Shown here piece after piece: positions 7,501-61,232 of a stretch of 64,000 bases of DNA. The position numbers and the translations under genes were made by a program. Under the pieces are notes generated by a model. That model was given only the letters and a program-made list of their open reading frames with translations, ran no database searches and had not been told where the DNA came from. Position 1 is the stretch's first letter. Each line of letters starts with the position of its first letter. The stretch is from the NCBI GenBank assembly GCA_020536535.1, contig JAHLWZ010000605.1, positions 21,625-85,624 of the forward strand, given 5' to 3'. The stretch comes from Pelomyxa schiedti (Eukaryota; Protista; Evosea).

Positions 7501-9712
7501 AAATTCCTCAGAGGCAGCTGCCAAAGAACAGGTTTCTTTGAACCTTTGTATTAATGTTTCTTACTCCCTCTGAACTCCAGATTCAAGAATTGACTGATAA
7601 TATGCAAAGACTCAGTGCACAACAGCAGCAGGAGCAGCAGGAACACAGACACCAAATCGATGTTTTGGAGCACTCTATTTCCTCTCTACAAGAGAATGCG
7701 GAGGTAATGCGCCAGAGACATGCTGAGGAGATTGACTTGCTCCGTAAAACACAAGAGGATGAAGCTGCCCAGCATCAGGCTTCCACACAAAAGCTTGTTG
7801 CGCAACTTGCACTTCTCAGTGAGCAAAGTGGTGAAATGCGACAGCAGGCGGAACAAAAACTTGTTCAACTTTCACAGATGAATGAAGAAATCGAAGTCAA
7901 AAGGAAACAAGACGAACTTGCTCTTAAACGCAATGTTACAAGTACTGTAAAAAAGAAAAAACGCAAGCTAATAGAAAATAGAACTGGAGCATGATTTGTC
8001 GGATAGCAATTCACAATATTCCAAGCTACAATTGCAGTTTTCTCAGTCGCAAGCCGAGATAAAAGCTCTGAAGGTTGTAGAATTTAGAGTCCATTCTATG
8101 TAATCATAATTAGGAAAGAATTGAAGAACAAGAGAATATGCATACAGCTACTGCAAAAAAACTACAGACAAAGATTGCTTCACTAACAACAGTATTGAAT
8201 TACACTAAAGAGTGAGTGTAGTTTAAAACGCCTTCCATAGGAAGTGGCAACTGCAAAGGAGAAATGGCGTACAACCATTTCCTTGGGCAATCAAAAAGCC
8301 AAACAGCTTCTCTCTCTTAATGCCCGACTTCTTCAACAAGTATCTTTTCCAAACTTCCATCTCGATTGAAATTAATCTCTATTTCTTAAGGCCGAACAAG
8401 AAAAAAAGCGGTTTCAAGAAGAATCTAAAGTAAGCAGTAAGCGCGCGCAACGAGTCAGGGAATTGGAAAGCCAAGTCGAGACTCTCAATAGTCAACTGGA
8501 ATCACATAAGTTGCAAGTTGAAACACTGACACAATGTGGATTACAAACGGGAAAAATGCAAGAGGCAAGATATGCACTTTTTACACAAACCTTGACCATA
8601 TTTAGACCCTTTCTGCAGAACTGGCACAAACAAAAGAAACCTTCACAAGGTAATGTTTCACGCTGCAATTCACCCTAATTTCCTTGTAGGGAGGTTGCAC
8701 TACTTCAAAAGAGCGTGCAAAGTTTAGAAGAGCAACTGAAGGTTCCTTTATAGTGACTGGTTGCAAGATTAACTTCATTTCCTTTCAGGAATCACAAAGC
8801 CACAGTAGCGAAACTCAGTCCCTATTGACTTCCAAAGATGAGCTACTCCGGTCAACACAAGCCGCCGTCGAAGAGGAACAGCGCAAGGGTGTCAAGTGTG
8901 TCCGCTCCCCCCTCCCATATTCCGCGAATCCAAAAAAAACCCCCTCTTAACCCATAACCCAAAAAAAAAAAAAAAAAAAAAAAAANNNNNNNNNNNNNNN
9001 NNNNNNNNNNNNNNNNNNNNNNNNNNNNNNNNNNNNNNNNNNNNNNNNNNNNNNNNNNNNNNNNNNNNNNNNNNNNNNNNNNNNNCAAAAAAAAAAAAAA
9101 AAAAAAAAAAGGGCACAGAACACCATATCCAAGCTCACCAACCAAATCAAGGCGCTGGAAGATCAACTGGCGGACACGACGCGTGGCCGGGCGCACACCC
9201 ACCTCGACATACTCACGCCGGCGGCCGCGGCCCTCGTTGCCAACACGTCGACGTCGCCGGAGCTCCCGCCCGCGCTCCCGACGCAGGTGTCGTCGGCGCC
9301 GCCAGCGCCGCCGCCGCCAAAGCCGGCCGCCGCGCCGCCGGTCCCGCCGCCGCCTCCCAACGCCGGCGGATTCAAGGCGGCCAAGCCGACAGCGAGCACA
9401 TCCACCAACCTGATTGCGCAGATAAACGCACAGAAGCAACAACTGATGAAAAGGCAGCCGGAGGAGAAGAAGTCAAAGGTAACACTACCTTGTCCACTGT
9501 AGTATAGGTTTATGCTAAATTATAAATACTATGGCACCTAAAACACCCGCGCACACCGTCCCACAATCTCCTTATACGTTTGGCAGACGGATCCATCACA
9601 AATTCACTCTGTTGCCGAGCTTCTGTATGTGTCCCTGCACAAAAAATTCCAGTCTGTGCACGAGAACGGTGAAGCTGAAGATCTGGACGATGTGACTGAC
9701 GATTTTGTGTAA
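4549..9712 (+). CDS. Multi-exon protein: low-complexity N-terminus, two or more ubiquitin-like (FERM-F0/RA-like) domains, long coiled coil, polyproline and WH2-like C-terminus
   Basis: Repeated beta-grasp-like units (KRFRVQSSWTVQKVLNLVCQKF...EPLASFGFGTLFQSWEL; EPIRNIIKSVCSKFEI...ATLESYGLGWKFNTWNL). E/Q/K heptad exons span 6560-8880. After the gap: PPAPPPPKPAAAPPVPPPPP then NLIAQINAQKQQLMKR. The last exon is uncertain and the model spans the N gap. Confidence 0.55.
8986..9085. other. Assembly gap (100 N) flanked by poly-A runs
   Basis: Seen directly: 25 A before the gap and C plus 24 A after it, within a probable intron. Confidence 0.99.
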
Positions 9713-55700: not shown

Positions 55701-56644
55701 TATTAACCTTCAACAGGAGTTGCACGAGAAGCGGTTTCAATACGTCAAGCTCATGGACACTGGATTCTTGAACTTCCATGTAATAAAACTTTACTGGATC
55801 TTGCCCCTTCAAGTCTTGATGCTTTCCCTGTTCACGGCTGTTTGTTCACCCAAGGTTTTTTTTTCTTTTTTCCCTTAAAGAGACTTTATCTCAGACACCT
55901 AAATCAGGCATTAATGAAGAGCAGTCCATGGCCAATACCATGGGTGACACCCAACTGCAAGAAACCATAAACTTATCAAGTCTTGATAAGTTGCGGTCTC
56001 ACTTTGAGCAGTATTGTAAATGGGTTACAGAAATAAGTGGAAAAGATGTTAAGAAGCTTGAAATACTTCAGGAAGACTTTCAGAGATTATCACATCGGAT
56101 TCACAATGTAGATAAGTGGGTAGTTTTAACTACTTTTTTTTTCTAGCCTAATTTTGTTCAACAGAGGTGGTAAAGACGTCATCATGTTAACTGGCGTTGC
56201 AGATTTCTGTCGTAGTATTGGAGGAGTCCGGTGTACATCATGCAAAAGCGCAAAAGACAGGTACCCACCTTGTAGTACATATTTTAGAGTTATTCTCTAA
56301 TACTCAAATAGGACGAGCATGGGGGTAACCTGGGAAAATGTACGCATTCTTACAAGATACCATGGCCTACCTCCTGACAAGGCACAATCAATGATGGATG
56401 CAATGAGGTTTAGAATTCACTCATTTTCGGTTCCACTTCTAATACTGGTATCAGAGAAGCTGGTGTTAGGCGTGTGAATGTGAAAAAGAACATTGGAGAG
56501 GACAAGTTTGCTTTCAATGCACTGCAAGCAAGGTATGCTGTGCCATTGTACAAAGAACTGCATTAACAAATAAATAGACTCCTACCAGAACAGTACAGAC
56601 CTCCCAGGTCAACACAAGCTGGCTTTGTAGGTGTAAAATCATAG
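52734..56644 (+). CDS. 7TM (THH1/TOM1/GPR137-like) domain fused to inositol polyphosphate 4-phosphatase (INPP4-type)
   Basis: Seven hydrophobic helices (RKIFHCLL, HCLFFVSFLTVLLFL, YWVPEFISPSLMLHIMR). In-frame GT-AG junctions (e.g. 53997-54045, 54202-54250) continue into ELRESVLSFSVPYQI, FKPSSLKSDKRFQFVPINLH, YPTVTFGAAAAH, catalytic CKSAKDRTSM (Cys at 56241), GVRRVNVKKNIG and LPEQYRPP; TAG ends at 56644. Confidence 0.85.
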
Positions 56645-56738
56645 CTCCATTGAACATAGGCGCTAATCTAAAGAAAATTCACCTCAATCAATCTGTTCTC
56701 TTTTTTTTTCCCCTCTGTTCAGTCAATTAATACCGCCC

Positions 56739-57741
56739 ATGGACGAGACGACGAGAACCGATGAAGGGAGCAGGGAAGTGACGTCAACAGTGACAACGAC
56801 GGCGTCTGCGAGCAGCGCGGAAGTGGTGACAACGGCGGCAGTTGAAGTGCAGGCTCCCGAGCTGAGTGAGGGCGAGGCTACGTTGGGCTCGTTTGCTGCT
56901 GTGAATGTATTGTGGGACAACGTTTCGTTGGGAGTTGGTGCTCTGCTGCTTACTTCAAAGTGAGAACATCATTTGTTTGTTTTTTTGTTTTTCATATTTT
57001 CTTTTTCATTTGGATTGGTGCAGTGGTGGCATTCATGGCCTGCGTGTCTTCTATGTTTTATATGTTTTTGTTTTGTGCTCTTTCACTGAGCCATATTTGA
57101 AAGGATTTTCTTAAAAACCTTTAAAACATCCAATGTGTAATGTTATGAAGGCAGGCATATTGGTACACTCTAGGGGCAACTAGGAATTTTGATTACCATA
57201 ACATCAGCTTGTATGCTATATCGCGGGATCCCACCACGGGCTACCAGCCCTGCATTTATGCTCATGTAGATGACCCTGATTATTCTGATGGGTACCATGA
57301 AACGCGATTCATTCCTAGTGATCCTACCTTACGTATGATAATATTCCTTTTAGTTGGGACTCACCATAACAAGTTGAGCGCATGTTCCAAGCATTTTCTG
57401 ATGGGTCCTCAATGAACCCAGACCCACCTGGTGTGTGGTCTTATTTACACACAATTTGTTTTCAACACTCTGTCCAGATGACTCTGATGATGAAGGTAAT
57501 GCTTTTTTCAATGTGGATGAAGTTATGGAAGGTGCGAGACTTGATACTATGGCCAGTCACTTTGAGGTTATCCTTTTCCTTTCACAGTTACCCATTCTAC
57601 CCCTGATACAACTCCAAGACAATGGTAGTCACTGAGGAGACACCAGCCGACGAGGCTGAGGAAGAAGAAGAGGAAGAAATAGATGATGCTGACACCAACG
57701 ATACTGAAGAACACACACATGGCCGAAGTAGCTCCTCTTGA
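56739..57741 (+). CDS. CLNS1A: pICln / methylosome subunit (Voldacs domain)
   Basis: LGVGALLLTSK, FDYHNISLYAISRD, PCIYAHV, ETRFIPSD, MFQAFSDGSSMNPDP followed by acidic tracts. Confidence 0.8.
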
Positions 57742-57754
57742 ACCAAGCCCCAAA

Positions 57755-60502
57755 CTAAAGAATATTTTTCATGAAGAAGCCTTTTTTTCCCCCGCTATTG
57801 ATTTGGAATTGGGTTGAAGGGAATGAAGAGGCGAGAGGAGCACGGGCCACCTCACGAGCTCTGGTTGCACCGTTGACCTGTTGCGGACCTCTTTCTGTTC
57901 CCACGGGTAGACAGCTGGTGCACAATCTTAAACTGTGAGGAGACTTGAGTGGCTTTTTGTAGTTCACGGCGAGTTTCGGGTGCCACGTTTGGTGGTACAT
58001 AGCACAGTGTTCCTTATTGGTTGAGGAGTGATTACCTTGGGTAGGAGAAGGAAGGTACCAGGCTCTTTATACTTTTCGTGCTTGCCTATTTGTGCATACT
58101 TCACCAGTATGACCTGACCCTTTTGGAGACCCCGAGTCTGTTCTCCAGGCTGGTGTAGAAGCAACTCTAACACTGCCGATTTGAAAAACATCTTCCTCTG
58201 TACTTTATTCTCGAAAACTACACAGTAGGTATTTCCTGAGACTTTGTCCACCACACCACAAACTAGATCTGAGAACAAAAGAAAACTTGAGAAAAACTCA
58301 AAACGTAGGAGGTAGTGGATACCAATAGTTTCAGAAGTTTGGAGATCCAAAGCGGCAGTGCTACGGGGTATGAGATCCGGTTCCGGCACGAGGTTGAGGC
58401 GTGGAACCTCTGGGAACTTTTGAGCAATGGCTGTTTCAGTTGATAGGAAGCTCCTTGGGTTTATGGAAAACGCCCCCGGTCTCAGTTCTATGCATTGAGT
58501 GATGCCCATAAGTCTGTAAAAGCCCAATAGGGAAGGTGGCTTGCCTTCATAAACCCTGAACACCCCTTCATTCCCCTGGTTTTTGTTTGGGCTAGGTTAC
58601 CAAGGGAAAAATGGAACATCATTTAGTACCTTTTGGTTGTAACAGACCACACAGTTGGGAGTGCTAAGTAAACACCGCACCACCACTTCAGGCCTGCCCT
58701 CTCTACACGCCTCAAAGGATCCCTCTACCTCCCCTTCCTCAATTTGTTTGTCATCTACGCCCTCTGCCACTGGTTCATGCCCACCATTCTGATGAGGCGA
58801 ACTTGACTGCTGGGGGAACTTGGAGGAGGTGGTGAAGGTAAGGTTAAGCTCCTTGGGTGATGTGTCTTGCCCTCCAATGTCACTGTTTGTTGCAACTAAA
58901 GGTTGTTTCTGGGGCACAAAACTTGAGCACGAGAGAACATCTGCCAGGTTTGACGGTAAAGCATCCAATCCATAGTCATCATTGGATATTGCAACAGGGC
59001 TCGTGATGGAACAGTGACGAGGTGCCAAAGAGTTTAGGCTGCCCACATTCACTTCAGTATTTGAATCGAAAGGCAGACTTATTGTTGATGAAGTCAGGGA
59101 AGGAGTGTCGGAAGAAGTTGGGTGACCTGCTTTAAGAGGAAGTGGTGGTGGAACATAACTCAATTCATATTGGGGGGTTGAATACGGTAAGGGGGACATG
59201 TGATTGGCATTAGCAGAAAGAGGTTGAAAAGAGATAGTGGAAGTAGAAGAGGAAGTTGAAACTGTAAGCTGGTCCAGCTCCAAAGAGGTAGAGGAAGTAT
59301 GTCCACTATAAACAGGACCACTATTCATTTCCACAAACAAAGAGTGCAGTGACGTAGTATTTTCTGCCTGATCACTGCCAATATTACCATTCTGGCACCC
59401 AGAAGGAGTCTTGGTAAGCTTGTTGGGCACGATTGTGAGCTTGGAATGTCGGTATTTTTTCTTTTGTTTGTATGGTATAAGCACTCAAATTGTCGAATTG
59501 CACACTGCCTCATTAGCGTTGGAGTCATCTGTTAATTACATACAAACCAAACAGAGTCATAACTAGGTTCAGACCTCCTAGTCCCTCCACCTACCACCAT
59601 CCTCACCAGGTCCAATCACGGTTTCTCTATCCGCACAAAACAAACCTATCGGCGGTACTCGAATGACCAACGCGCACGCCTATGTGCTCGCACACTCTGG
59701 GTGCTCTACGTGACTTGGTGGTGATCAACACGATTTTTCGTTGACCAAGAAAGCCATGCCAGTATGTAATTAACAGATGACTCCAACGCTAATGAGGCAG
59801 TGTGCAATTCCACAATTTGAGTGCTTATACACTCTGTACTATCAACAATAATATCAGCCACCTGTATACTTTATGTGATGTGCAAAGAAGACTAGACCTC
59901 ACCTCCGGTACTTCTACTAGAATTTTCAGTTTGTTAAGTGTATCCGTAATAGAGTCCACAGTCGAAACAAATGGCTCCTCAGGACTAACTACAGCAGAGG
60001 TATCAACTGTAGTGACCATCTTATTTGTCTCCGTGCGTGGCTTGACATCACCCCAGACAAGAACTGGATGTCGGAGCAAAACATGTGCCACGGAAGCAGG
60101 ATTTGGTTCCGAATCATTTCTCTATATCATTTTGTTAAACAAGTTTTCTTTAGTATGTCTTTTTACTTACTTAAGACTCCTCTTATTAGCGAGTCGAGGG
60201 CGTTAGCTTTACGATGTAGCTTCTGTATCCACGACCTAACAGCTGCAATATCTTTGGTGGATCCAAGGGAAGCCTAAGGATAGGGTAAGAATAAGACCCA
60301 AGAGATTGGTGCATACAACTCTAGCGATCTTTTCTCGGAGGGACACAACTATACGCGACACTGTGGCGATTACAGCACCGTGAGTCTCCCCAGTGACGCG
60401 AGCCACTGTAGGCAACAACGGCAGGTTTATCACATTGCTGGAAGGATGCGATGTAGTATCGGTTGCTGCGGAAGAGGGTGTTGTTGTACTGTACTGCGCC
60501 AT
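57755..60502 (-). CDS. Hypothetical protein with long S/T-rich region and probable tandem C-terminal OB folds; interrupted by a TIR element at 59480-59825
   Basis: In-frame exon chain from ATG 60502. The C-terminal beta-rich units VVVRCLLSTPNCVVC..GVFRVY..GFYRLMG and VCGVVDKV..YCVVF..AVLELL..GLQKGQVILVKYAQI resemble OB folds. The stop is 57964 or 57755, depending on a 23-nt candidate intron. Confidence 0.45.
59480..59825. mobile_element. MITE-like non-autonomous DNA transposon, 64-bp TIRs, TATA target-site duplication
   Basis: 59480-59543 is the reverse complement of 59762-59825 with one mismatch (59494/59811). TATA flanks both ends (59476-59479, 59826-59829). The 218-nt interior has no coding capacity. 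Removing the element plus one TATA restores the host frame (S-T-E-C-I-P-Y-K). Confidence 0.8.
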
Positions 60503-60722
60503 TGCACCGCAACTAAGTGTACAATCGAGTTCTTAAGGTTGTAGTCCAGCTGGATCTTGATGCGGGATCTCGGCACGGATTACTAAGCACCATCATACCG
60601 CCTCTTGGGTTTTTTTGTTTTATTTAATTGTCTGGTCGTTTTTTCGACTAAATGATGGAAAAAGTATTTGAAGGGCGGCAATAAGCGTACGTTTTCATTC
60701 TAGCGTGGTTCGCGAGGTTCAC

Positions 60723-61232
60723 TTAGCACTGATCGCAATTGTGGGTCGGTGGAGGCTCCCATAATTGTTGCCTGTGCCCGGGCCCGGGCCGCTCAAAAAT
60801 TTGTAGATAGTGACCACCCGGCACCCAACTGAGGACGGTGAGACTGGGGCCAGGGCCATGTGCTATATGTAGAGGGGACTGAGTGATGACACACTCGCGA
60901 TTGCACTTATTACAGGGAAACAGACGACGTGCTTCTGCCCCGATGTATGCAAATCGTTGCTTATGGGTGTGGCACACATTTTTCACTTTGACACTGGTGG
61001 AAGTGGAACCTGAAGTGAAGGGTGCCTCAGTGAAAGTTGCTGAAATGAGAAAGAAGAGGGTGTGCAGGGAACACCAGAATAGTACACAATTTGAACAAAA
61101 AAAAAAAGGAGTACAAAAACAAGTGCTGTGGGTCAAAGAAGTTGCCTGGCAAAGGAAACTCAAACTGGTTGCTGTTTGAAGTTTGATCAGAACTAGGGTA
61201 CAATATGGCCTTTCTTTTCTCTCATTACTCAT
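60723..61232 (-). CDS. Possible small Cys/His-rich (zinc-finger-like) protein
   Basis: Open frame ending VCHTHKQRFAYIGAEARRLFPCNKCNRECVITQSPLHIAH...HNCDQC-stop with an ATG at 61232. No family was recognised and it may be spurious. Confidence 0.25.
   Translation of the reverse strand: MSNERKERPYCTLVLIKLQTATSLSFLCQATSLTHSTCFCTPFFFCSNCVLFWCSLHTLFFLISATFTEAPFTSGSTSTSVKVKNVCHTHKQRFAYIGAEARRLFPCNKCNRECVITQSPLHIAHGPGPSLTVLSWVPGGHYLQIFERPGPGHRQQLWEPPPTHNCDQC

Follow-up and report, generated by a model that had tools for sequence, protein, structure and literature searches.

Within the 64-kb stretch of DNA analysed here, from the anaerobic amoeba Pelomyxa schiedti (termed the window, in which all positions are given), contig C605 of the assembly carries the minus-strand gene Pelo_7723 and, on the 5' side of that gene, a 346-nt element that occupies 59480-59825 between two copies of TATA. 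A repeat search identified the arms 59475-59543 and 59762-59830 as an inverted repeat of 69 nt, 99% complementary and 218 nt apart, each arm being made up of a true terminal inverted repeat (TIR) of 64 nt, the palindromic TATA, and one flanking G/C pair that matches by accident. The parts of the element, to which no strand is assigned, are as follows:

59476-59479, unstranded: left copy of the target-site duplication, TATA (TA at 59476-77 if 2 bp), a direct repeat on both sides
59480-59543, unstranded: left terminal inverted repeat, 64 nt, 63/64 complementary to 59762-59825
59544-59761, unstranded: unique core, 218 nt, GC 51%, with no ORF longer than 54 codons and no tRNA or Rfam match
59762-59825, unstranded: right terminal inverted repeat, 64 nt, from the repeat search
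59826-59829, unstranded: right copy of the target-site duplication, TATA, a direct repeat on both sides

The inverted repeat is not a product of chance, and the 64-kb window contains no other inverted repeat of >=22 nt with high identity. The sole mismatch between the TIRs pairs a C at 59494 with 59811; an earlier sequence-only reading of this DNA had described just such a 346-nt element with 64-bp TIRs and one mismatch, as the repeat search and the comparison of the arms confirm. The longest open stretch inside the element, 54 codons, enters from the flank, and neither an Rfam scan nor a tRNA scan gave a match within the element. As RNA the element folds at -186 kcal/mol (z = -14.6). The target-site flank at 59462-59483 also resembles, in inverted orientation, the inner end of the left TIR at 59530-59551 (22 nt, 77%), a similarity that is probably due to chance. 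Elsewhere in the window, 100 N at 8986-9085 mark a scaffold gap.

The TATA direct repeat can be extended no further outward. Since TATA is a palindrome, a TA duplication would fit equally well, and the element would then measure 350 nt (59478-59827); the earlier description of a TATA duplication is thus borne out as to the presence of TATA on both flanks, while its length could be two or four base pairs, a choice that also changes the reading frame of the upstream sequence. The GTATAC proposed for the empty site is present in the reconstructed pre-insertion sequence. These features support the earlier proposal of a bounded, recent-looking insertion that has TIRs and a target-site duplication.

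The element had also been called a MITE. It shares with MITEs, and with small non-autonomous TIR transposons in general, its short length (346-350 nt), non-coding content, near-perfect TIRs, and short AT-rich duplication at a palindromic site, with an ORF that returns on excision. Unlike MITEs, it stands alone in the P. schiedti assembly (52.4 Mb, 5337 scaffolds), where neither a second copy nor a related TIR nor an autonomous partner turned up, and its TIRs of 64 nt are long for a MITE and nearer to the foldback type. Thus TIRs, a target-site duplication, and a small non-coding body were all found, and a multi-copy family was not. A search of the assembly with the whole element returned this locus alone, as did a search with a 39-mer of the TIR allowing <=3 mismatches; the terminal 20-mer of the TIR, at <=3 mismatches, gave 5 non-self matches compared with 3 for a reversed control, a yield at chance level. 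The 218-nt core, searched at E values of up to 10, matched itself alone, and JGI metagenome contigs contained no exact copy of a 22-mer of the TIR. On the strength of these searches the element is an orphan in the assembly, without family or autonomous partner, and the MITE label is not supported there. A single-copy transposon of this kind, lacking both family and partner, is unusual. As the assembly is ~82% BUSCO-complete and derives from amplified single cells, other copies may be missing from it. By its duplication the element could be Stowaway-like (TA) or belong to a 4-bp-duplication type such as Sola; the ambiguity between TA and TATA precludes assignment to a superfamily.

With both flanks as queries, no empty-site allele was found in the assembly. 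The 3.1-kb contig C1821 (1-3131) was considered for this role and rejected, being a diverged duplicate without the whole gene body. It corresponds to both flanks of Pelo_7723 (window 56541-61104), with 93% identity to 56541-57960 and patchy identity of 70-95% to 59964-61104; the 2-kb gene body is absent from it, as is the element, and it carries at the junction an inverted copy of 60034-96, i.e. a fold-back. C1821 could represent a paralogous locus in decay, or else the contig may be chimeric.

The DNA behind the assembly came from seven single cells and was amplified with GenomiPhi (PMC8887013), and inverted chimeras are a concern in a genome amplified in this way. The inverted repeat might therefore be a chimera of whole-genome amplification (multiple displacement amplification) or an assembly artefact, an idea to which the uniqueness of the element in the assembly and the fold-back of local sequence in the related contig C1821 also lend some colour. 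Such a chimera would have identical arms copied from adjacent sequence and no target duplication, whereas here a single base distinguishes the two arms, neither arm repeats sequence from its surroundings, and the 218-nt core is likewise unique; the unit is bounded by a clean 4-bp direct repeat, and its excision restores an ORF. Random chimeras, moreover, are of low coverage and seldom survive consensus assembly. An artefactual origin is accordingly considered extremely unlikely.

Pelo_7723 (NCBI; 440 aa, hypothetical protein) is encoded by the window at 100% identity. When the NCBI protein is mapped to the window, the following exon structure results:

59328-58630, minus strand: exon 1, with start ATG at 59328-59326
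58629-58576, minus strand: intron 1, 54 nt, verified, with an in-frame TAA
58575-58323, minus strand: exon 2, from protein mapping
58322-58269, minus strand: intron 2, 54 nt, from protein mapping
58268-58059, minus strand: exon 3, from protein mapping
58058-58013, minus strand: intron 3, 46 nt, from protein mapping
58012-57855, minus strand: exon 4, from protein mapping

The apparent stop between the 295-codon ORF of the sequence-only reading and the next ORF falls within intron 1, the position of which recurs in a paralog on contig C496. The annotated ATG, at 59328, follows the element at a distance of 148 nt. The public model thus puts the element outside any coding exon, since the start of Pelo_7723 is downstream of it, and the earlier placement of the insertion inside a coding exon disagrees with that model. 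The gene models of P. schiedti were produced with Augustus, PASA, and EVM with transcript data (PMC8887013); among the entries of the protein database, none for Pelo_7723 derives from a transcript.

The genome encodes at least six paralogs of the C-terminal ~200 residues of Pelo_7723. This Pelomyxa-specific C-terminal family, with a conserved intron position, is found on C496 (1239-4412), C946, C242, C414, and C1636. Protein database searches, in which the exons of Pelo_7723 were queried one by one, recovered no homolog of the C-terminal ~200 residues outside the species, and Pelo_7723 has no Pfam match. ESM Atlas returned weak OB-fold/HIN-like leads (0.82), and a single-sequence AlphaFold model, at pLDDT 36, was unusable.

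P. schiedti genes carry 7.4 introns on average (PMC8887013). A search of the window for intron signals by expectation-maximisation on ORF pairs yielded none, and an HSP70-anchored set was used instead. The splice matrix was built from 23 verified P. schiedti introns, 20 from HSP70 paralogs and 3 from Pelo_7723, and its discrimination is weak. The HSP70 introns were anchored by exon matches to Pfam PF00012 and resolved by alignment to intron-less paralogs. The HSP70 family of this species is large, with 69 exon-level PF00012 matches, and the contigs that contributed introns include C199, C816, C650, C496, C751, C611, C819, C761, and C798, among others. Most of these 20 introns are 43-85 nt long, with YAG acceptors and, frequently, a YTAAY branch-like motif 8-18 nt before the acceptor; the set provides splice-site training material usable for this genome. 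Across all 23 verified introns the median length is 59 nt (43-85 nt, with outliers of 167 and 233 nt), the donors are of the GTA(A/T/C), GTGAG, and GTT types, and the acceptors are CAG in 13 cases, TAG in 7, AAG in 3, and GAG in none.

Upstream of the annotated start, the frame of the gene is open across 59484-58600. The following features bear on what the element may have interrupted:

59475-59329, minus strand: 49 stop-free codons between element and ATG, probable former coding sequence, codon usage +0.11 bits per codon
60121-59831, minus strand: upstream 98-codon ORF, ATG 60019, codon usage +0.14 to +0.21 bits per codon
59902-59862, minus strand: candidate 41-nt intron, GTGAGG..TACAG (..VADIIVDSTEC/IPYK..), matrix score +7.2 bits

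The 98-codon ORF has an ATG in good context at 60019 and ends at a TAA (59827-59825) that was created by the duplication together with the end of the TIR. Under the TA model this ORF is directly in frame with the gene (..IVQSV/PYKQKKK..). Under the TATA model 13 codons are open upstream, and the candidate 41-nt intron links them to the 98-codon ORF; this candidate is the top short GT-AG in 60600-59280, and none of 518 sampled random GT-AG pairs scored as high. The codon usage of both upstream stretches resembles that of real exons, and the last 14 codons favour the TATA frame; the TATA model may be preferred, modestly, over the TA model. Because a long open frame returns when the element is removed, the insertion probably struck former coding sequence, and a longer ancestral reading frame would have been interrupted. 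The earlier claim that the insertion lies in a reading frame therefore fares well in this form: the target was very probably a former ORF, excision linking the 49 codons to the 98-codon ORF. The coding status of the upstream ORF is argued from its length, its codon usage, and a single predicted intron. The ORF is not contained in any annotated protein of 53-170 aa, and its searches for homologs returned none but the decayed, DNA-level duplicate on contig C1821.

Just before the 98-codon ORF lies a further candidate intron of 49 nt (60170-60122, minus strand; GTAAGT..CTAAAG..TTTAAC..TATAG). Since it joins no upstream ORF in frame, it may be an intron in the 5' leader of Pelo_7723. Its counterpart on contig C1821 shows an internal deletion of 29 nt.

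These observations can also be read in a quite different way, namely that the element sits in a non-coding 5' UTR or promoter, that ATG 59328 is the original start, and that the upstream frames are a coincidence or an untranslated leader. The public model, built with transcript data, does start at 59328, the N-terminal extension has neither paralog nor homolog while the C-terminal domain has its paralogs, and the candidate intron at 60170-60122 behaves, in joining no upstream ORF, as a leader intron would. Yet the joining of 49 and 98 open codons under both duplications would be expected by chance in ~1 in 1000 cases (a rough estimate), the codon usage is exon-like, and a gene predictor would pick the first ATG past a disrupting insertion regardless. 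A non-coding location is judged rather unlikely on this balance.

The sequence-only reading further proposed that the element is introner-like and can be spliced out of the transcript in frame. The features concerned are these:

59830-59484, minus strand: proposed 347-nt intron, GT at 59830-29 and GAG at 59486-84, in frame
59902-59461, minus strand: alternative in-frame route from donor 59902 to a cryptic AAG at 59463-59461, 442 nt, +2.2 bits
59708-59706, minus strand: TAG stop on read-through in the frame of the sequence-only reading, from frame translation

The read-through TAG occurs as described, in that frame. The GT at 59830 and the AG at 59485-59484 likewise both exist, and joining them gives ..S-T-E-L-L-I-P-Y.. 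in frame with a gain of one codon. The GTATAAG donor at 59830 is of an acceptable type (-3.6 bits); the GAG acceptor scores -8.9 bits, and the reservation voiced about it at the outset is well founded, GAG being the acceptor in 0/23 verified introns. The total for the pair, -12.5 bits, falls below that of all 23 verified introns, both in-sample and leave-one-out, and the 347 nt exceed the length of every verified intron (maximum 233). On paper, the route from donor 59902 to AAG 59461 would remove 17 codons, and it scores above the proposed pair.

How often insertions of this shape offer such a splice by chance was simulated by placing 4000 TIR-shaped genomic fragments of 346 nt into real ORFs and scoring each for a GT-AG pair that lies close to the two junctions, keeps the frame and meets no stop:

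<=6 nt from both junctions: any pair in 12.5%, score at or above the observed in 11%
<=12 nt from both junctions: any pair in 36%, score at or above the observed in 32%
<=20 nt from both junctions: any pair in 61%, score at or above the observed in 56%

As the splice-out geometry is this common among simulated insertions (11-56%), it provides no evidence of function.

To count as introners, by definition, introns must form a family with >=4 near-identical members in unrelated genes (different paralogy groups) and with consistent, transcript-supported splice sites (PMC12130899). The introners of Symbiodinium have TIRs and 4-bp duplications, bring their own 3' site, and take their 5' site from the duplication, and some families add or delete codons (PMC9860276); other examples come from Micromonas and Aureococcus (PMC9860276, PMC12130899). 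The P. schiedti element resembles introners, on paper, in drawing a GT from flank plus duplication, in having an AG inside the far TIR, and in the net change of one codon, a small in-frame change of the sort that 11-56% of the simulated insertions also allow. It differs from them in being present as one copy rather than a family, in having no annotated intron, in a GAG acceptor foreign to host introns, which leaves the splice sites at odds with the host consensus, and in a proposed intron ~6x the host median length. With splice sites that match the host poorly, a geometry at chance level, a single copy, and no annotated intron, the label introner-like finds no support beyond the arithmetic of the frame, and the conclusion that the element is a member of an introner family or a functioning intron is not supported.

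The element could still be spliced out as a new intron, yielding a near-normal protein, by way of GT 59830/AG 59484 or of 59902/AAG 59461. Both routes are in frame and stop-free, the GTAT donor type is found in real P. schiedti introns, the 64-bp stem would draw the intron ends together, the genome is intron-rich (7.4 introns per gene; PMC8887013), and introners with a duplication-derived 5' splice site are documented in Symbiodinium (PMC9860276). Against this stand the acceptor and the total score reported above, a length of 347-442 nt vs the verified maximum of 233 and median of 59, the ease with which the geometry arises by chance, an annotation that shows no intron here, and the lack of a family of copies; splicing of the element as a new intron thus appears improbable. 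The specific scenario in which a lone, fresh TIR element is already spliced from Pelo_7723, through the duplication-derived GT and a cryptic AG or from the natural upstream donor, is regarded as very improbable.

The explanation adopted, which is held to be probable although with real reservations, is that a recent insertion of an orphan TIR element truncates the 5' end of the lineage-specific gene Pelo_7723, the element not being established as an intron. A small, non-coding DNA element of cut-and-paste type would have inserted recently into the 5' part of the gene, presumably by the action of a transposase. Before the insertion, a frame would have run from an ATG near 60019, over the 41-nt intron, past the insertion site, and into exon 1. 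The insertion now puts stop codons into every route that retains the element, and for this reason the annotation of Pelo_7723 starts at the next in-frame ATG, 59328, where translation, if there is any, probably starts as well. The present product would have lost ~100 N-terminal residues, if the upstream sequence was indeed coding. As in an ordinary 5' truncation by a transposon, stops are introduced, the annotated coding sequence begins afresh at the following in-frame ATG, and Pelo_7723 keeps its conserved C-terminal domain; no feature so far distinguishes the locus from an ordinary gene disruption or 5' truncation of this kind.

In-frame GT-AG pairs arise by chance around a large share of exonic insertions, and comparable 'introner-like' calls in this genome carry weight only once RNA evidence backs them. 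If the element is truly spliced, it would offer a rare snapshot of the birth of an intron from a non-specialised transposon, without any introner family, and would do so in an intron-rich archamoeba. On present evidence, the locus records an ordinary transposon insertion that has probably cost a lineage-specific gene its N-terminus.
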